DNA from: Octopus sinensis
Lineage: Eukaryota
Direction of reading: 5' to 3'
Length of the DNA: 64,000 nucleotides
NCBI RefSeq assembly: GCF_006345805.1
Contig: NC_043010.1
Span: 59,458,001 to 59,522,000, forward strand
Shown: positions 9,633 through 64,000 of the stretch, in pieces
How positions within the stretch are numbered: position 1 is the stretch's first letter
How the letters are laid out: the number at the start of each line of letters is the position of its first letter
Program-made: the position numbers and the translations under genes
Notes under the pieces: model-generated
Told to the model about the DNA's origin: nothing
The model's input: the letters and a program-made list of their open reading frames with translations, nothing else
The model's database searches: none

Positions 9633-11899
9633 ATGTTATTGTGCCTCTGTATTTTACTGACTTTCTTCCACTGTTATCTAAGTGAAGATATCACATACCA
9701 TGTTGAAGAAGAGAAGAGTCCCTATACCTCTGTAGGGGACATTGCTACTGACTTACAGAAATCAAACAGCTCCTTCTTAAAGGATAAGGATTTAACATTT
9801 AGTCAACTGCAACAAAAGGGAGAACAGTTGTTCAATGTGACAAGAACAGGTAAACTGTACACTGTTGAGACATTGGATGCTGAGTCTGTGTGTAGTTATG
9901 AGAAAGAATGTTTTGAAATCGTTAAAGTTGCAGTTCACAAATCCAAGACATTTATGAAGATCTTAAAGATTAAAGTCATCATAGAAGACATCAATGACCA
10001 TCAACCTGAGTTTCCTGAGAAAGAAATCACACTAATCTTTCGGGAAGGTGACAGAGATGGAACGAAGAAACCCATACATAATGCCATCGACAAGATAAAG
10101 GTTATCAAAACAGCTTAATAACATATGAATTGATGAAAGATAATGGAAAGTTTTCATTAAATGTTTCCAAACAAGATGATGGATTATCAACACTAAGAAT
10201 TATTTTAGAAGACAAATTAGACAGAGAAAAGAAGGACAGTTACAATATTGAAGTCATTGCTAAAGATGGAGGAACTCCACCAAAAAAATCTGTTTTAAAC
10301 GTTAAAATAACTGTGGAAGATGAAAATGATAATGCACCGCAATTTTCTCAAAGTATCTACAATGTTTCTATAGAACATAAACATAAAAAGAATATTCCAG
10401 TAGTCACATTATCTGCCAGTGATTTAGACATTGGCAGGAATGGTAAAATATCTTTCTATTTCAGTCAGAAAACTGATGAAAAAATAAAAGAATACTTTCA
10501 TTTAGATGAAAGTACTGGGAAGTTATTTCTTGAAAAACCTATAAATTTTGGTAAGAAAGAATCATTTAAATTATATGTGAAAGCCAAAGATAATGGAATT
10601 CCTCCTCTCAGTTCCATTGCAATAATTCAGATAAATATCATCAACCAACACAACAATCCTCCAAATATTGATGTGAACTTTATTTCTACACAGAATCACA
10701 ACACAGCTACCATTCTGGAAGACATCAAAGTTGGTAGTTTCATTGCTTATGTGATGGTCACTGACAATGATATTGGACACAATGGACAGGTGAACTGTCA
10801 TATCAAAGATGACACATTCAAACTACAGTCAATGGGATCGAAGGAATATAAAATAGTTCTAAAGAAAGCAGTAGACAGAGAGACACAGGAACATTATCAC
10901 TTTACTGTGTCGTGTGAAGATAAAGGATTACCTGCTCTGAAAACTGATAAAGATCTGTCAATCCAAGTGTTGGATGTGAATGATGTAGAGCCACACTTTA
11001 CAAAAGACACATTCAAGTTCCTTACCTATGAGAATGACAAAGCTAATTTCCCTATTGGCTTTATCAATGCTACAGACCCAGATATTGGTAAGGGAGGTGA
11101 ATTGTCTTATTCTCTGAGAAATAAACAGCAATATCGTCTGCCATTCCAGATTATCAACTCTGGCTTTATTTCAACAAACCAGTCTTTAGACAGAGAACAC
11201 AGAGATTTCTATGAGTTTGAGGTTTTTGTGAAAGACAATGGAAGCCCATCTCTGAATAACACAGTGAATGTTGAAGTGGAAGTATTGGATAGAAATGATA
11301 ATGCTCCATATTTTACATTTCCTAGTGTTGACCCTTTCACTCTTAATGTCCACTATCATCCGCAAAGTAAGAACGACATCACAGTTTTGAGAGCTTCAGA
11401 CAGAGACAATGGAAATAACGCTTTTCTCAAGTATGAAATCGTTTCAGGTAACGAGAGACAGTTATTTAAACTGGACTTGTTCACTGGTGTGTTATCTTAC
11501 TCTCGCACAGTTTACCAAAATGATGTCGGATCATATGTGCTTGAGTTTGTTGTGAAAGACAGTGGTACTCCAGTTCTGTCAGCAACAACTAGCCTATTGT
11601 TGAAACTAACTATTGACAAAAAAATATATCCAATGAGCCTTACATTAATAATTATAATTGCTGTAGCATGTGTAGTTGTATCTTTGGTTGTCATAGTTTC
11701 TCTTACAATATGCATCTTTAAACATATTGAAGTCAAGCAGAGCTCGAGTGCCAGACCAATGCCTTCTATAACAGAAATGAATGACTTCTATAACCGAACA
11801 GATTCCCTGTCTGTATCCCAAATTGACAATATCTATAGAGAATTAATACCAGAAAGGTACAAATATAAACGGTCAACATCTAGTAGTTTCTCAACAGTA
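9633..11899 (+). CDS. Pcdh: Protocadherin gene A, ectodomain exon (signal peptide, EC1-EC6, TM, proximal tail); -1 frameshift at ~10092 in this sequence
   Basis: ORFs 9633-10118 and 10130-11998 join if one A is restored in GACAA(A)GAT (compare NAIDKD in genes B and C). Cadherin motifs DINDHQP, LDRE, DENDNAP, DRNDNAP; EC1 C-X5-C; hydrophobic TM; upstream acceptor at 9575-9576; phase-0 donor GTAAGT at 11900. Confidence 0.9.
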
Positions 11900-12074
11900 G
11901 TAAGTATTCCAATATTTTACAGTTATCTGCACAGACAAGTTCTTTTAAAATTTGATGTTAAATTTCATTATTTAGACACACTGATAATAAAACTTTAAGT
12001 TCTCTCCGACATTCCATGATAGTATTTTATCTCATCATATAATTGATTCATTGAACTCTCACTTCCTTTTAACA

Positions 12075-16926: not shown

Positions 16927-17071
16927 CCAAGACCTTTTCCTATGTGCTCTGAAGAACTTAATGCTGCTGCATATCCACACTATCTGAACCAAACATTAGG
17001 TTACTATCATACGATAGAATCGTCGAGAAAAGGAGAGGCCCATCACTATGAAGAATTGCCAGAGACATTAG
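16927..17071 (+). CDS. Pcdh: Predicted cytoplasmic exon of Pcdh gene A (PRPFPMC...HHYEELPETL)
   Basis: Acceptor TTTATTTGAACAG, 145-nt open frame, phase 0 to phase 1, donor GTAATT at 17072; YEELP matches YEEIP in the gene B exon, with the same phases. Confidence 0.75.
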
Positions 17072-39093: not shown

Positions 39094-39118
39094 GATAATA
39101 ATAATAATAATAATAATC

Positions 39119-39164
<46 letters not shown>

Positions 39165-39192
39165 TAATAATAATAATATAATAATAATAATG

Positions 39193-39223
<31 letters not shown>

Positions 39224-39225
39224 TA

Positions 39226-39264
<39 letters not shown>

Positions 39265-39282
39265 TAATAATAATAATAATAA

Positions 39283-39328
<46 letters not shown>

Positions 39329-39360
39329 TAATAATAATATAATAATAATAAATAATAATG

Positions 39361-39418
<58 letters not shown>

Positions 39419-39426
39419 TAATGATA

Positions 39427-39457
<31 letters not shown>

Positions 39458-39547
39458 TATAATAATAATAATATAATAATAATGATAATGATAATAACAA
39501 TAATAATAATAATAATGATAATAATAATGATAATAATAATAATAATG

Positions 39548-39587
<40 letters not shown>

Positions 39588-39616
39588 TAATAATAATGAT
39601 AATAATAATGATAATA

Positions 39617-39669
<53 letters not shown>

Positions 39670-39837
39670 ATAATAATAATAATGATAATAATAATGATAA
39701 TGATAATAATAATGATAATAATAATATAATAATAATAATAATAATATTAATAATAATGATAATGATAATAAATAATAATAATAATAATAATGATGATAAT
39801 AATAATGATAATAATAATGATAATGATAATAATAATG

Positions 39838-39886
<49 letters not shown>

Positions 39887-39986
39887 TAATAGTAATAATG
39901 ATAATGATAATAATAATGATAATAATAATAATAATGATAATAATAATAGTAATAATGATAATAATAATAATAAATAATAATAATAA
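39094..39986. repeat. ~890-bp (TAA)n microsatellite interspersed with TGA
   Basis: Direct inspection. Confidence 0.97.
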
Positions 39987-51111: not shown

Positions 51112-53472
51112 ATGACATTACTAATTCTGATGGTAATAATATCTTTCTTCCTCCCTGGGGCATGTATAGACATTACAGTTCGTTTAAAAGAAGAAAATAG
51201 TCCCAAAAGCTATGTGGGGGACATCACTGCTAATTCACAAAAGTGGCTCCAGGACAAAGAAGATCTCAGTCAGATTACATTTAATCAACTCCAACAAAAG
51301 GAGACAAAATTATTCAATGTCACCCAGTCAGGGAAACTGTACACGGTTCGGACAGTGGATGCTGAGTCACTATGTAGATATAATACAGAATGTTATAAAA
51401 CTGTGAAAGTTGCTGTTCACAAAGGAAAAAACTTCTTGAAAATCTTGAAAATTAAAGTAGTTATAGAAGACATCAATGACCACCAACCTAAGTTTCCAGA
51501 GAAGGAAATCACTTTGCACTTTGGAGAAGGAGATGGCAAAGGAATGAAAAAGTCCATTCCAAATGCCATTGATAAAGATGTTGGAGTTTTAAATAGTGTA
51601 ATTAATTATCATTTAAAGAACAATGAGGAAATGTTTTCATTATTAGTTTCTAAAAGAGCTGATGGAATATCTCGACTAGAGATTGTTCTAGAAAGTAAAT
51701 TAAATAGAGAAGTGAAAGATATGTACAGTGTACAAGTTGAGGCTGAAGATGGAGGTTCCCCTTCTAAAAAGAGTGTATTAGATGTGAAAATATTAGTAGA
51801 AGATGAGAATGATAACTTACCAGTATTCTCACAGAATATTTATAATGTTACTATAAAAAGTTATTTTCAAAATGATGTACCTGTTGTCACTTTGTCAGCT
51901 ACAGATTCCGATATTGGCAATAATGGGAAAATAAATTATTATTTTAGTCCCAAAACGTCAGAACTTGATAGCAAACATTTTAGACTCGTTAAGAAAAGTG
52001 GTGAGATATTTTTGATTGATAAAATTGATGCTATCATTGACAATGAAGTTTATACATTATACATTGAAGCCAGAGATGGGGGCAACCCTCCTCTGAGTTC
52101 CATAGCAACTGTTATGGTAAATGTCATCAACCAACACAACAATCCCCCAAATATTGATGTGAACTTTATTTCTACACAGAATCACAACACAGCTACCATT
52201 CTGGAAGACATCAAAGTTGGTAGTTTCATTGCTTATGTGATGGTCACTGACAATGATGTTGGACACAATGGACAGGTTAACTGTCATATCAAAGACGACA
52301 CATTCAAACTACAGTCAATGGGATCGAAGGAATATAAAATAGTTCTAAAGAAAGCAGTAGACAGAGAGACACAGGAACATTATCACTTTACTGTGTCGTG
52401 TGAAGATAAAGGATTACCTGCTCTGAAAACTGATAAAGATCTGTCAATCCAAGTGTTGGATGTGAATGATGTAGAGCCACACTTTACGAAAGACACATTC
52501 AAGTTCCTTACCTATGAGAATGACAAAGCTAATTTCCCTATTGGCTTTATCAATGCTACAGACCCAGATATTGGTAAGGGAGGTGAATTGTCTTATTCTC
52601 TGAGAAATAAACAGCAATATCGTCTGCCATTCCAGATTATCAACTCTGGCTTTATTTCAACAAACCAGTCTTTAGACAGAGAACACAGAGATTTCTATGA
52701 GTTTGAGGTTTTTGTGAAAGACAATGGAAGCCCATCTCTGAATAACACAGTGAATGTTGAAGTGGAAGTATTGGATAGAAATGATAATGCTCCATATTTT
52801 ACATTTCCTAGTGTTGACCCTTTCACTCTTAATGTCCACTATCATCCGCAAAGTAAGAACGACATCACAGTTCTGAAAGCATCTGATATAGACAGTCACA
52901 TGAATGCTTTTCTCAGGTATGAAATCGTTTCAGGTAACGAGAGACAGTTATTTAAACTGGACTCTTTCACTGGTGTGTTATCTTACTCTCGCACAGTTTA
53001 CCAAAATGATGCCGGATCATATGAGCTTGAGTTTGTTGTGAAAGACAGTGGTACTCCAGTTCTGTCAGCAACAACTAGTGTGTCTTTGACACTGACTGTT
53101 AGTAACAAGACGTCACCAATGTTCACAGCTGTGCACCTACCAAGTGATAACACAATAGATGCGACATTGTTGATTATCATTGTAGTAGCAGCTGTGATAG
53201 TATCTATAGCTATTGTGGTTTCTATAACCCTGTGTATTGTGAGATGTAACAATGTGAGAAATAGCTCATCTGAAAGAACAGCAGAAGAGAAACAGGCATA
53301 CCAATGTCGCAATGAGATGAGACAGTTGATCTATCAAGGTAACAACAGTGTACCTGTGATGTCAGGTAATCGAGGAGAAATGTCTGACAGATATGGTCAT
53401 TTGAGGAGCCATTACTATCCTGAAGACTGGAAGACATCGACAATGAGCAGAACACTTCAAAAGTCCACAAAG
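51112..53472 (+). CDS. Pcdh: Protocadherin gene B, ectodomain exon (signal peptide, EC1-EC6, stalk, TM, proximal tail), intact
   Basis: 805-aa ORF with signal peptide MTLLILMVIISFFLPGACI, six cadherin repeats and TM LLIIIVVAAVIVSIAIVVSITLCIV; phase-0 donor AAG|GTAAGC at 53473. Confidence 0.95.
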
Positions 53473-53972: not shown

Positions 53973-55000
53973 TGAGGTGGTATCAAAAAACTGATTATGT
54001 TTAATAAAATATAACTTATTTACCTAAGTTTTAACATCGTCTCCTTCAAAGTAGTCATTTTGCACAGGAATACATCAGTCCCAGCATTCCTGCCGCTTTT
54101 GGAATCCGGCCTGGAAGTTGTTTTCAATGAACGAGTCGAGGACCTTCTGCAATTCATTGTGGATCTTGAGAACAGTATTAAAATGGTGGTCTTTGAGCTG
54201 CCTTTTCATCTTGGGGGAAGAGATGGAAATCCACAGGTGACTAAATCTGGTGAATAGGGCAGGTGCAGAAGTGATACCATGTTGTTTTTGATGAGAAATT
54301 CACAAGTAAGGAGAGCTTTGTGACAGGGTGCATTGTCGTCATGAAGAATCCAGTTCTATGTACTCCACAGATATGGTCACTTTTGCCAAACATCCTTGCT
54401 TAAATGCTTCAAAATGTTGCAGTAGAACTCTTGATTGATGGTCTGGCCCCAGGGGATGAATTCTTGATACACAATGAGGCCAACGTTGAAAAAAAACGAT
54501 GAGCATGCTCTTGATTTAGCTGCAGTTCTGTTGTGCCATCTTTGGTTGTGAAGATGAAGAGTTTCTCCATTGTGACAACTGTTTCATCTCAGGGTCGTAT
54601 CTGTTGACCCAACACTTGTCATCAGCGAGGATCCTTGGATGGGTCATCAGTGGCACATTGACAGAGATCTTGACAGATATTGATACAATGTCCTTTCTGC
54701 TCAGTGGTCAACAAGTGGGGGACAAACTTAGCAGAGACACACTGTATATTCAATTTAGATGTTAGAATTACCTGCACAGACCCATACGACCTCAGCAATG
54801 TTATTGATTGCCCTCTGATGATCTTCATGCACAAGCTGATGTATTTTCTCCACATTTCTGGGTGTGATGCTCTTAGCAGGTCTTCCAGATTGCTCGTCCT
54901 CCAGGGACATTCTTCTGCTTTTGAAGCACCCATGCCACTTGAAACATTACATACAACCCATTGCCTCATCGCCATAAGCTTTCCAAAGCTTGTTCAGAAT
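53973..55000 (-). mobile_element. Degenerate mariner transposon in a gene B intron
   Basis: Minus fragments VSAKFVPHLLT.EQK, DECWV..YDPE, HHDDNAPCH and HLPYSPDL; TA plus TIR-like end at 53971-53990. Confidence 0.85.
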
Positions 55001-55363
55001 TTCGCATTGGCTCAAAAATATATATTTTGTAAGCAGTATATTACTATCTTTTAATGTATATATCAACTTCTTTTATAAGAGTGACATCTTGTTTCATTAA
55101 GAACTTATTAGTGTTACAATTTATTAACTTTTAATTGGATATATTATCTGTTGATATTTCAAATTACTTTCCACGCGTGTGCTTGTGTGTTATATTGTTC
55201 TTAGTCAGTTGATATAATATATAAGCAGCTGTTTTACCAGTCATGAATTGAGCCAAAATTGGTAATCCATTAAACAAGAACTAATGTATTTCGTATCAGG
55301 TGTATCACCGTCAGTCATAAATGATATCTCTATACTGTACCATGTTGTTACTGTATTTTATAG

Positions 55364-55517
55364 CAGAAATACAGCCAACCAATAGAGGTGACATCTTATG
55401 GAGACAACAGACCATCCTCTAACTATCCCACTGACACATTGACCAGTCGTAAGAGCAGTGGACAGTGCTGGAGTGAGCGGTCAAGCAGACAGTATGAAGA
55501 AATACCAGCAATGTCAG
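55364..55517 (+). CDS. Pcdh: Predicted cytoplasmic exon of gene B (QKYSQP...SGQCWSE..QYEEIPAMS)
   Basis: Tandem acceptor TAGCAG (55361-55366), open phase-0 frame, phase-1 donor CAG|GTAAAA at 55518; YEEIP parallels the gene A exon. Confidence 0.8.
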
Positions 55518-56089
55518 GTAAAACAATTTCATTCATTCATGTTTTGTTATTAATTCTGTTCATAGTTTTTACTTGAGAGATTAATCAGCTCTAAATCTCT
55601 AATTTACTAATGCTTTAAGCAACATGAATCATCTTTAGATGTTAAAAGTTGCTTTTGCTATTTTATCATGATGGAAATCAGCACAAATATAGATATGCTT
55701 CCAACCTAGATGGGTAGGGTTACTTTATCACACTTGCATTTCATTCTTGGCTGGATGCCCTTCATAACACTAACCACTTTACAGAATGTACTGGGTGCCT
55801 TTTTTGTGCCACCAGCACTAGAGAGGTGTTATGCCCTTCACAAAGTGTACTGGGTATACTTTTTATGACACCATCCCTAAAGAAGTAGCTATTTCTTCAA
55901 CCTCACCAGCCATTTCACAGAACGAGAAGCATAAGTCAGAGGCTTAAATGATAGTGATATGAAGGATGTCTGAAAACAGGTGCTGTGGTAGCAGTGCTTA
56001 GTATTCTGAGATAGGTGTACAAAGTGTTTGGGCTGAATTTGACAGATTGCATAAAAGAAAAAGAAACCACATTAAAAATAAAGTATTTT

Positions 56090-56560
56090 CTTTCAAAAAA
56101 TCAAAAACTATCAAGTAGATTATGGCTGGGAGATATCAGTTTGCTCAAAGTAGCTGCCCTCAGCTTCCACCTTGGCTCTGGAACTTGGTGTATGTGTCCC
56201 TCACTGTGTCCTGGTAAGATCTTCAAATGCTTCCTTTACTATGGCTACCAGCTCGGCCTTGGTGTTGCAAGCAGAGTGGTTGGTGCTTTTCTCAATTGTG
56301 CCCTGTACACAGTAATCCAAAAGAATTAGAAGACCAAAAATTGAGGCTGGTGAAGTCATAGAAATTCTCAGACAACCATCTCTGATTCTTTCCGGAGGTA
56401 TGGAAAAGAGCCCAATCCTGGCAACACACACAGGCTTCCCAGCAGCAACCCTCTCCAGCCAGGGTTTGACCACAGTCTTGAGCAGCTTCACATAACCATC
56501 TGAATTAAACCTAAGGCCCCGTTCATCAGTTGTTGGGAGAACACCTGCTGTGTCCCTTCC
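56090..56560 (-). mobile_element. Degenerate Tc1/mariner (maT-like) transposase fragment
   Basis: Minus ORF 56201-56491 VVKPWLERVAAG...DY..QG.IEK.TN...CNTKAEL. Confidence 0.65.
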
Positions 56561-57779
56561 TGCTGACCACAGCTACATAGTCTCCATTGCAGCTTAGGAT
56601 GTGTGGAAGATAAGGAACAAGAGGATACTGGCAGGAGTGATGGGGGTGATAACAGGAAGTAAAAGAGGTGAAGTTGAAGGTAGAGTGAACTGGGTATGAA
56701 TGGTTCAATTGGTCTTCGTATACATTGGCTAAAAGACCAACCAAAGGTGTCAAATGATCAGAGTGGTGTCAGAGGAAATGGAAAACAGGTGGGTTCTGTG
56801 AATGGCATAAAGGAATGTTTGGGGCAGAGTCAGAACAGGTGCAGTGATGTCTGTAGTTACAATGGAAGCCATGTACAGCAAAGTGAAGGAATATATTGCT
56901 ATCCTCACTCACATTGGGAAGAGGAGTGAATGGTTGAAAGATGAGCAATAGGCATGGGTGAAAAGAAGATGAAGGATAAAAGCATAGAGGGGAGAGTGCA
57001 ATTTGTGATGAACAGAAGAGGTGTGCTGCTATCGTCAGTCACACTGAGTGCATAGTATAGTGAGATTGGGAGATTGAGAAGAAGAAGAGGAAACGATTAA
57101 GAGATGAACATTAGGGGCAGGAAGCTAGGGTGAAAGAGATATGGGTGACAGTAGACTGATGAGTTATAGAGAAGTGTAATGCAAGGAATGAGAGATAGAG
57201 GTGTGAGTGACAAAGAAAGTGAGTAATATTGGGTGAGAGACTTATCAGTAAGCAGACGTGTACACATACATATACATATGCTTAATGATACATGTGTGTA
57301 TGTATACAAATATAGCTAACATTGTTTTAGTGTGTTTTGCCACGCCTAGATGAGAAAGCAGATCTCTCACACTGTGTAACTGGTCACTGCAGGCCTTTGT
57401 CATCGTCTCTGTGGTGTGTTATGGTTTCTGATCTGTCTTCACCATTTCACCTTTCTTGTATCTCTCTCTCTCTCTCTTCCACAGGTTCCATTTCCTTTGG
57501 GAAAACATGCACAATTAGTTGTTCATCTGAATAAATATGTAATTGTAGTGTGGTTTCTAGTGTGTTTGGAACAAATAGAGCAGAACTGTATTAGGAAACG
57601 ATATGGTGTGCATTTAATTGAAATAAGCTTCTTAGTTAAGGACACTTAAAACTTGATCTTTATTTTATATTATAGCCCAGTCATTGTAGCAGACTAGGAA
57701 TTGATTACTAACATCAGTAAATACCTATTTATTATATAAACTGTGTGATAAATGTAGTTGATATATGTGTGTGTTTCAG

Positions 57780-57901
57780 GAATCTATGGTGGTGCCCCAC
57801 CGGATGTATCAAGCACCAGTGAGAGAGACCATTACCAAGACAGATATGTGAAACCTCCAGAGAGACAGTTACCTTCAACACCAGATGTTGTTGTCAGTTA
57901 A
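57780..57901 (+). CDS. Pcdh: Predicted terminal exon of gene B (GIYGGAPP...KPPERQLPSTPDVVVS*)
   Basis: Acceptor GTGTTTCAG; phase-1 entry gives an open frame to TAA at 57899-57901; Pro-rich C-terminus. Confidence 0.75.
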
Positions 57902-58242
57902 GTGAGACTGAGAAATGAACACAACAGAAATAATATCTCACCTTCAACATTCACACAACATTTAAAACAACAGAAATATATTAGTTAGTTAACAATATTT
58001 CCCCACATGTGACTGTATATTTTTGTATGTGTCTGAGAGAATATTCATTTTATATATGCTTTGGAAAAGTTTGCACAAATGTAAAACAAAAGAGGAGCTT
58101 TAGAGATGAGTTATAAAATATTGCAGTTAGATAAGGCAAAGTTAAGGAATGATAAGAAATTATAGTCAGAGATTTTTCTTGGTGCAATACAATTTAAAAC
58201 TGAAAATGTAAATTGAATTTTACTTTACATACATAATTAGAA

Positions 58243-63314: not shown

Positions 63315-64000
63315 ATGTTATTCCTATATGTTTTACTGTCTCTCTTTGACTGTTATTTAAGTGAAGATATCACATATCATGTTGAAGAAGAGAATAGCCC
63401 CTACCTATAGGGACATTGCTACTGACTTAAGAAATCAGACAGCTCCTTCTTAAAGAATAAGGATTTGATTACATTTAGTCAACTGCAACAAAAGGGAGAA
63501 CAGTTTTTTCAATGTGACTAAAACAGGTAAACTGTACACTGTTGAGACAATTGGATGCTGAGTCGTGTGTGGTTATGAGAAAATGTTTTGAAATCGTTAA
63601 AGTTGCTGTTTTCACATCCAAGACATTATGAAGATCTTAAAGATTAAAGTCATAATAGAAGACATCAATGACCACCAACCTGAGTTCCCCGAGAAAGAAA
63701 TCACCCTGCAATTTGAAGAAGAATATGGGAAAGGAAAACAAAATCCTGTACCTAACGCTATTGACAAAGATATAGGTTATCAAAACAGTTTAATTAGATA
63801 TGAGTTACATGGTCATACAAATCTTTTTTCATTATTTGTCTCTAAACAAGCTGATGGATTATCAACCTTAACAATTATTTTAGAAGAGAAATTAGACAGA
63901 GAAAAGAAGGACAATTACAATATTGAGGTCATCGCCAAAGATGGGGGAACTCCACCAAAACAATCTGTTTTAAATGTTAAAATATCTGTAAAAGATGAAA
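63315..64000 (+). pseudogene. Pcdh: Protocadherin gene C, 5' part (signal peptide, EC1, EC2), frameshifted in this sequence; pseudogene or assembly error
   Basis: High nucleotide similarity to gene A 9633-10325; about 8 small indels in 63400-63630, then an uninterrupted frame 63628-64000 (DINDHQPEFP..NAIDKD..LDRE..KDGG); acceptor at 63265-63266. Confidence 0.8.

Follow-up and report, generated by a model that had tools for sequence, protein, structure and literature searches.

YEE[IL]P, a conserved candidate SH2-binding motif in the cytoplasmic tails of octopod clustered protocadherins

Comparison of octopod protocadherins demonstrates that a five-residue motif, YEE[IL]P, is the most conserved piece of their cytoplasmic tails, that it is common to most members of the family, and that strong purifying selection acts on it as a short linear motif within a fast-evolving tail predicted to be disordered. 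It is very probably functional. The motif is considered here from a stretch of 64,000 nucleotides of Octopus sinensis DNA (NCBI RefSeq assembly GCF_006345805.1, contig NC_043010.1, positions 59,458,001 to 59,522,000 of the forward strand; source record chromosome CM016872.1), hereafter the window, which holds three protocadherin units arranged head to tail: gene A, gene B and the 5' part of gene C. The tail of gene B carries YEEIP and, further downstream, a proline motif, RQLPSTP. Gene B itself is already annotated; the new part is a candidate SH2/SH3 docking module in a protocadherin tail.

The sample consisted of the tails of the 120 best matches to gene B, which come from O. sinensis, O. 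vulgaris, O. bimaculoides and Argonauta hians at identities down to 50%. The commonest 4-mer in these tails was YEEI (77 of 120) and the commonest 5-mer was YEEIP (71 of 120). YEE[IL] was present in 82 of the tails; 200 shuffles gave 0.34 on average and never more than 4. An earlier note on this DNA, which read the gene B motifs as ligands for Src-family kinases, had made that proposal hinge in part on whether YEE(I/L) is conserved across paralogs, and it is, far above background and in four octopod species. The motif is thus not peculiar to gene B.

A block homologous to the second exon of gene B was found in 97 of the 120 tails, and these blocks were reduced to 33 lineages that are less than 50% identical to one another outside the motif. 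Across these lineages Tyr was retained in 29 of 31, the first Glu in 29 of 30, the second Glu in 27 of 30, Ile or Leu in 28 of 29 and Pro in 23 of 29. The motif columns carry 3.2-4.1 bits, compared with 1.2-2.3 bits at positions -5 to -1 and approximately 1-2.9 bits in the other well-populated columns. The exon-2 profile was seeded from motif-bearing sequences, which colours these column values, but the k-mer and shuffle counts given above are independent of the profile. In a whole-tail alignment (A4), the Tyr, the second Glu and the Ile of the motif are the only invariant residues past the juxtamembrane helix, and the remainder of the tail exon outside YEEIP has diverged to approximately 20-30% identity. 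Substitutions of the motif Tyr are rare, with one HFDDLP and one QCEELP seen among the 120. AlphaFold2, run on the same alignment, gave structure only to the end of the transmembrane helix and to the juxtamembrane helix (residues 24-41); the rest was modelled as coil with pLDDT of about 45-68, including YEEIP itself at tail residues ~131-135 (pLDDT ~50-60). A second conserved block containing a Tyr, EM[RK]QLIYQ (gene B tail residues 35-42, window ~53300-53340), lies in the juxtamembrane region, where it is near-invariant and predicted to be helical.

Gene B is an octopod clustered protocadherin, with cadherin repeats, one transmembrane segment, a single large exon for the ectodomain and transmembrane segment, and a place in a head-to-tail tandem array. 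Its first exon is a single open reading frame (ORF) of 805 amino acids that gives a 100% tblastn match to residues 1-787 of P0001, and the exon borders are AG/GT with compatible phases (0, then 1). The three exons together encode 878 amino acids that are residue for residue those of XP_036365172.1 (protocadherin beta-15-like isoform X4, Octopus sinensis), so that the splicing predicted in the earlier note is the splicing of the RefSeq model. A Pfam search of the product returned Cadherin (1.7e-67, in five stretches) and Cadherin_2, and a hydrophobic segment is followed by a tail of 173 amino acids. A Pfam scan of a 170-residue gene B tail with E values up to 10 gave nothing relevant. Two families precomputed on the matches, PF28399 and PF28393, were considered as tail motifs and set aside, as they are Ig-like cadherin folds of the ectodomain (Ig_CLSTN and Ig_Cad99C_N). 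The peptides QYEEIP, RQLPSTP and HYEELP, the last of them in gene A, are all encoded on the + strand as had been claimed. The range earlier assigned to RQLPSTP, 57863-57883, is exact, whereas those assigned to the other two, 55493-55507 and 17047-17061, begin at the Tyr and not at the preceding Gln or His; the full hexapeptides occupy 55490-55507 in gene B and 17044-17061 in gene A. Gene B exon 2 opens with a tandem NAGNAG acceptor at window positions 55361-55369 (atag/CAG/AAA; 55364/55367; here and below a slash marks a splice border), and RefSeq isoforms X5 and X6 use the alternative site and do not contain the Gln encoded there.

The proline motif has a much narrower distribution. RQLPSTP is near-invariant only in the near clade of gene B, which includes Octopus and Argonauta sequences, and is found exactly in 31 of the 120 tails; a few near-clade tails have single substitutions (RQLPTTP, RQLPATP, RKLPSPP and KQLPITP), and the string PERQL occurs in 32 of the 120. 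The motif is embedded in a fixed 20-residue block, (H)YQDRYVKPPERQLPSTPDV, preceded by 15-17 residues that vary, so that within the near clade both YEEIPAMSG and HYQDRYVKPPERQLPSTPDV are fixed and the stretch between them is variable. The loose class I SH3-type pattern [RK]xxPxxP was seen in 49 of the 120 tails against 9.0 expected from shuffles, and the related tyrosine motif Y[VLMAI][KQN]P, which is YVKP in gene B, in 40 against 2.1. YVKP aligns in A4 with YMKP, YLQP and the P-less YLKH in several clades, and a long-tailed clade has YAKP, YSKP or YTKP. Class I-type motifs occur in three separate clades and at different places in the tail, as YVKPPERQLPSTP, as SFTSY-x-KPLPA[VLI]P[KR] and as RRLPPVPQ. 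The strict class I pattern, represented by the KPLPAVP and RRLPPVP clades, was found in 14 of the 120 tails compared with 0.6 expected, and judged by their residues the KPLPA[VLI]P and RRLPPVPQ clades come closer to the strict consensus than gene B.

Several points weigh against taking RQLPSTP as an SH3 ligand. Approximately 7.5% of shuffled tails hold a loose class I match; RQLPSTP conforms to RxLPxxP but has Thr at the second hydrophobic position, where the strict class I pattern wants a hydrophobic residue; the prolines have been lost in two relatives (RQLSLTP and KQLSLTQ); and PSTP could alternatively be a site for a proline-directed Ser/Thr kinase. A single loose match would therefore be unremarkable, although conservation at the level of the clade appears to exceed chance. 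We consider the SH3-ligand reading plausible, but it is not the sole reading. The long-tailed octopod clade just mentioned (P0082, P0091, P0095, P0096, P0101, P0102, P0106 and P0114-P0116) ends in NSFT[ST][YF]-x-KPLPA[VLI]P[KR], and several of its proteins also have YEEL or YEEV farther upstream. A reading of the NSFTSY block of that clade as a WAVE regulatory complex interacting receptor sequence (WIRS) was rejected, the residue at -3 being basic and not hydrophobic.

How might YEE[IL]P act? SH2 domains read residues that lie C-terminal of a phosphotyrosine. We suggest that the Tyr of YEE[IL]P could be phosphorylated, after which an SH2 domain would read Glu at +1, Glu at +2 and Ile or Leu at +3. 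YEEI of gene B and YEEL of gene A conform to the Y-E-E-I/L pattern of the pYEEI class of SH2 ligands; the best match would be an SH2 domain of the Src-family type, with the Tec or Fes/Fer types also possible. We put the prospect that the motif works through phosphotyrosine and an SH2 domain at slightly short of even. The standard probe for the Src SH2 domain is printed as GEPQpYEEIPI, and Src SH2 domains bind pYEEI from a choanoflagellate (140 nM) to mammals (200 nM) (PMC5876402). The octopus Y-E-E-I-P is identical to the core of this probe and, as in SH2 ligands, is constrained only C-terminal of the Tyr; the probe, however, is a synthetic phosphopeptide with measured affinities, whereas the octopus motif is known here from sequence alone. 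A molluscan kinase of this family, Src2, acts in neuronal growth cones (PMC6727743).

In the subcluster to which gene B belongs, the YQDRYVKPPERQLPSTPDV block would add a class I proline motif approximately 37 residues downstream of YEEIP, together with a YxxP tyrosine. Through this proline motif the kinase might be bound by its SH3 domain as well, in the manner of the linked SH3 and SH2 sites that FAK presents to Src. Phosphorylated Y397 of FAK is a Src SH2 site. The Src SH3 site in the FAK linker, ERALPSIPK (363-375), lies beside the Y397 region (PMC6528292), and E-R-x-L-P-S-x-P is common to it and to the ERQLPSTPD of gene B, each protein having two linked sites in one disordered stretch. 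The two differ in that FAK has Ile where gene B has Thr, and in that one is a kinase linker and the other a cadherin tail. Moreover, the SH3 site of FAK precedes the Tyr, whereas in gene B the order is reversed, with the Tyr first and the proline motif some 37 residues later, and this counts against the parallel. Engagement of a Src-family kinase through both domains in the gene B subcluster is therefore put forward only tentatively, and we think it more doubtful than SH2 binding as such. Two immunoreceptor motifs were also considered, the tyrosine-based inhibitory motif (ITIM) and the tyrosine-based activation motif (ITAM), which share with gene B a Tyr with Ile or Leu at +3 in a receptor tail. 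Both were rejected for gene B: an ITIM, [IVLS]xYxx[ILV], needs Ile, Val, Leu or Ser at -2, where gene B has Arg and the family is variable, and the next Tyr, in IYGG, does not have the Leu or Ile at +3 that an ITAM, with its two YxxL/I motifs spaced by 6-8 residues, would demand.

Outside octopods the picture changes. A profile search with the exon-2 block across 1.84 billion representative proteins gave only 22 matches, and the named ones are from octopods except for one protein of the cuttlefish Acanthosepion pharaonis. When a 1001-amino-acid match (P0131) was used as the query, cuttlefish (A. pharaonis) proteins were retrieved, together with proteins from transcripts and contigs. Where the tails of decapodiforms (squid and cuttlefish) can be seen in spliced form, the block homologous to the octopod one is DSGHGWSEGDTGH-IDEMPD, -IEEMTD, -SEEVPG or -REEMS, or has diverged further. 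None has a Tyr where octopods do (HIDEMPD, HSEEVPG, HREEMS), which counts against the phosphotyrosine reading; an acidic-hydrophobic-Pro core can therefore persist without phosphotyrosine. From these sequences, the Tyr could be either a gain in octopods or a loss in decapods. Decapodiforms have a tyrosine motif of their own elsewhere: [DE][VI][IV]Y[QE] ends exon 1 in 42 of 117 decapodiform relatives (P0131, P0159 and P0164-P0277), and in spliced transcripts the motif continues across the exon 1/2 junction as YQEI, YEEI or YREI ([DE][VI][IV]Y[QER]/EI[GED]). This Y[QER]EI sits where octopods have KYSQP[IV]xVTS, and [VI][IV]Y[QER]EI at the decapod junction does fit the ITIM pattern. Upstream of the YEE[IL]P position, D-S-G-H-G-W-S-E-G is common to octopod and decapod tails (A4; P0131, P0133, P0138, P0140) and loosely resembles a phosphodegron of the DSGxxS type with one extra residue.

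The SH2 reading has to be weighed against the fact that YEEI fits both the YxxPhi pattern of adaptor-mediated sorting signals, in which Phi is a bulky hydrophobic residue, and the core of an LC3-interaction motif. As a sorting signal, YEE[IL] would be read unphosphorylated by the mu subunit of a clathrin adaptor (AP-2, AP-1 or AP-3) and would steer endocytosis or endolysosomal trafficking, with phosphorylation of the Tyr serving only as an off-switch. The Tyr and the hydrophobic residue at +3 (Ile, Leu, rarely Val) are the two best-kept features of the motif, the tail is predicted to be disordered and accessible, and in vertebrates the cytoplasmic domains of clustered protocadherins control an extensive traffic of these proteins to intracellular compartments. 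Yet mu binding constrains +1 and +2 little, and in octopods Glu at +1 (29/30), Glu at +2 (27/30) and Pro at +4 (23/29) are all retained, while decapod homologues keep [DE]E-Phi-P without a Tyr, which a YxxPhi signal would not tolerate. Constraint that runs from the Tyr to +4, with none on the N-terminal side and in a region predicted to be disordered, is therefore better fitted by an SH2 ligand than by a plain YxxPhi signal, and we judge the sorting reading rather unlikely. An LC3/GABARAP-interaction (LIR) core, [WFY]xx[LIV], would couple the receptor to autophagy-related turnover; the sequence conforms to this core, in which acidic x residues are favoured, but positions -1 to -5 vary and hold no conserved stretch of acidic or Ser/Thr residues, and LIR motifs do not feature a conserved Pro at +4. 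This we hold to be very unlikely.

The decapodiform sequences bear most directly on another explanation, that an older, phosphorylation-independent acidic motif of coleoids, D-S-G-x-G-W-S-E-G ... [DE][DE]-Phi-P-[GD], binds some partner and that the Tyr is an octopod addition or is merely tolerated. Decapodiforms keep the block in its IDEMPD, SEEVPG and REEMS forms without a Tyr, and the confinement of the block to the 22 proteins described above is in keeping with such a motif. The octopod Tyr, on the other hand, is joint best-conserved (29/31, and invariant in A4) and is rarely replaced even by Phe, and we regard this explanation as distinctly unlikely. It is also conceivable that the motifs have no function and are shared because tandem paralogs duplicated recently and exchanged sequence by gene conversion. 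In favour of this, the tail exons of neighbouring units are 95-100% identical, a tract of approximately 1 kb that resembles gene conversion links the first exons of genes A and B (both described below), and the conservation of RQLPSTP lies mostly in one recently expanded clade. Gene conversion would homogenise the flanks as well, yet YEEIP persists at approximately 20-30% exon identity in four species and two octopod families, and the two blocks YEEIPAMSG and HYQDRYVKPPERQLPSTPDV are unchanged across the near clade even though the residues that separate them differ from tail to tail. With flanks this diverged, gene conversion cannot account for the YEEIP pattern, and for YEEIP the absence of function is already disfavoured by these sequences; that both motifs are functionless we find scarcely credible.

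The tail exons of gene B belong to a larger array. A fetched locus (L001) adds units D, E and F, and units B-F all lie on the + strand. Each of these units has its own exon 2 and its own exon 3. At the DNA level, units B-F share 95-98% identity in exon 2, and units B, C, D and F share 98-100% in exon 3 (the exon 3 figures for unit E are unreliable). The 200-bp intron flanks of exon 2 and those 5' of exon 3 mostly show 27-67% aligned identity (up to 98% between C and D), the 200 bp 3' of exon 3 are approximately 75-77% identical (95-96% for C-D and E-F), and the exon 1 products of units C-F are approximately 56-80% identical to that of gene B over most of their length. RefSeq lists six isoforms containing gene B exon 1. 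Of these, X4 uses the tail exons of gene B itself, X1 uses the tail copy of unit E (His for Asn at residue 807; the model covers 29.7 kb), and X2 and X3 use the tail copy of unit C or D; X1-X3 thus join gene B exon 1 to the tail exons of downstream units up to approximately 27 kb away. The pair of motifs is indeed present in the gene B tail, as the earlier note had it, but it is not limited to gene B and forms a subcluster-wide module of near-identical tail exons. A single shared set of 3' exons in the vertebrate style was rejected for this array, each unit from B to F having its own exon 2 and exon 3; by its exon sequences the array seems to stand somewhere between private tails and constant exons of the vertebrate kind.

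Gene A presents a more diverged version of the same tail exon. The exon-2 profile used here was built from 28 diverged octopod segments with gene A excluded, and when the whole window was scanned with it in six frames, gene A exon 2 came second (E = 2.6e-4), behind only the exon 2 of gene B itself. YEELP of gene A lies three codons before the exon 2 donor, as YEEIP does in gene B. The sequence surrounding the gene A motif, which had been described as unalignable, is thus weakly alignable, and by sequence gene A exon 2 is a diverged homologue of gene B exon 2. The proposal that the two genes differ in signalling strength, SH2 with SH3 in B and SH2 only in A, did not find support. Gene A exon 1, which is 92% identical to O. 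vulgaris P0037, contains ORFs at 9633-10118 and 10130-11998 in different frames, as a result of a 1-bp deletion in a run of A near 10094 (GAC-AAGAT, aligned with GATAAAGAT in gene B). A protein search with the cytoplasmic region of gene A plus exon 2 found no annotated protein containing exon 2. No credible third exon was found for gene A, either in a search with the last exons of those motif-bearing matches that extend at least 15 residues past the motif or in a scan for phase-1 acceptors with Y..P. Read-through of exon 2 would give a product ending in HYEELPETLGNLIH and a stop codon.

In units C, D and E, too, the first exon is spread over several frames (L001 22204-24543, 28993-31401 and 35837-38292), and the tail exons of these units are intact. 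The broken first exons of A, C, D and E could be either pseudogenes whose tail exons are still used or homopolymer errors of the assembly. Within the half of the ectodomain nearest the membrane, the first exons of genes A and B share 95-100% DNA identity over approximately 1 kb (10626-11600 and 52112-53090), against 55-80% in the rest of the exon; this pattern suggests a tract of gene conversion between two paralogs that lie 41 kb from each other. The features of the window are collected in the table.

Table. Positions of the protocadherin exons and tail motifs in the window
Feature	Position	Strand	Details
Gene A exon 1	9633..11899	+	Frame broken near 10094; phase 0 donor GTA/GTAAGT at 11899
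Gene A exon 2	16927..17071	+	Phase 0 in, 1 out; AG acceptor, GT donor; encodes PRPFPMCSEELNAAAYPHYLNQTLGYYHTIESSRKGEAHHYEELPETL; YEELP at 17047-17061
Gene B exon 1	51112..53472	+	Signal peptide, cadherin repeats, transmembrane segment, juxtamembrane tail; phase 0 donor AAG/GTAAGC
Gene B exon 2	55364..55517	+	tttatag/CAG...TCAG/gtaaaa; 51 codons + 1 base; phase 0 in, 1 out; profile E = 7e-22
Gene B YEEIP motif	55493..55507	+	Three codons ahead of the exon 2 donor
Gene B tail peptide stretch			QYEEIPAMSGIYGG...; spans the Tyr of YEEIP
Gene B exon 3, coding part	57780..57902	+	Starts tttcag/GAATC; stop TAA at 57900-57902; encodes GIYGGAPPDVSSTSERDHYQDRYVKPPERQLPSTPDVVVS and the stop
Gene B YVKP	57845..57856	+	Second conserved Tyr motif, YxxP type Y[VLMAI][KQN]P, just 5' of the proline motif
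Gene B RQLPSTP	57863..57883	+	Loose class I SH3-type [RK]xxPxxP; includes PSTP (Pro-x-Thr-Pro site)
Gene C start	63315..64000	+	Next protocadherin unit; in-frame stops (tblastn); truncated by the window end; ORF broken in L001

Two further features of the window lie outside the protocadherin exons. An (ATA)n microsatellite of approximately 890 bp and 298 copies occupies 39095-39986, and because of it the window has a trough of 21% GC and a spurious minus-strand ORF of 309 amino acids. Minus-strand ORF fragments resembling a decayed transposase are present in both introns of gene B, at 54409-54975 (intron 1) and 56201-56491 (intron 2); a Pfam search with these fragments gave no match.

The closest published work is that of Styfhals et al. 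(2019; PMC6339937), who studied the same family with the same kind of analysis of motifs among paralogs. They reported that octopus protocadherins have no vertebrate cytoplasmic motifs, and their list of octopus-specific ones, after Albertin et al. (2015), comprises EC1, EC5, EC6, the transmembrane segment and a PP1 motif, [RK][VI]xF, only; neither YEEIP nor the proline motif is on it. Full-text searches for YEEIP turned up no paper on protocadherins among those listed, and targeted literature searches found no report of the motif in octopus protocadherins, although the supplement of Albertin et al. (2015) might show the motif in a logo. It has been remarked that the protocadherin expansions of cephalopods might help to clarify how the intracellular domain signals (PMC7339444), and a near-invariant motif of five residues that is identical to the core of the best-characterised Src SH2 ligand provides a concrete target for mutation in the study of such signalling.

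Putting these strands together, we propose that in octopods pYEEIP, carried on quasi-constant exons and accompanied in some subclusters by a linked class I motif, may recruit and activate a Src-family kinase on homophilic engagement, convergently with the vertebrate constant region, and that decapodiforms, which expanded separately, may do something similar through Y[QER]EI at the exon 1/2 junction. Taken as a whole, this scheme is doubtful. An association of vertebrate Pcdh-alpha (CNR) with the Src-family kinase Fyn has been reported (cited in PMC6339937), and convergence with it is suggested here by analogy. The two families also resemble each other in gene structure: in vertebrate clustered protocadherins, too, a large variable exon for the ectodomain is repeated in tandem, and small exons behind it provide many isoforms with the same tail. 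The vertebrate clusters, however, have one shared set of tail exons, whereas each octopus unit has its own copies and the octopus family expanded independently. The contrast between octopods and decapods, and the near-identity of the tail exons within the array, bear on whether independent expansions of protocadherins converge on one architecture.

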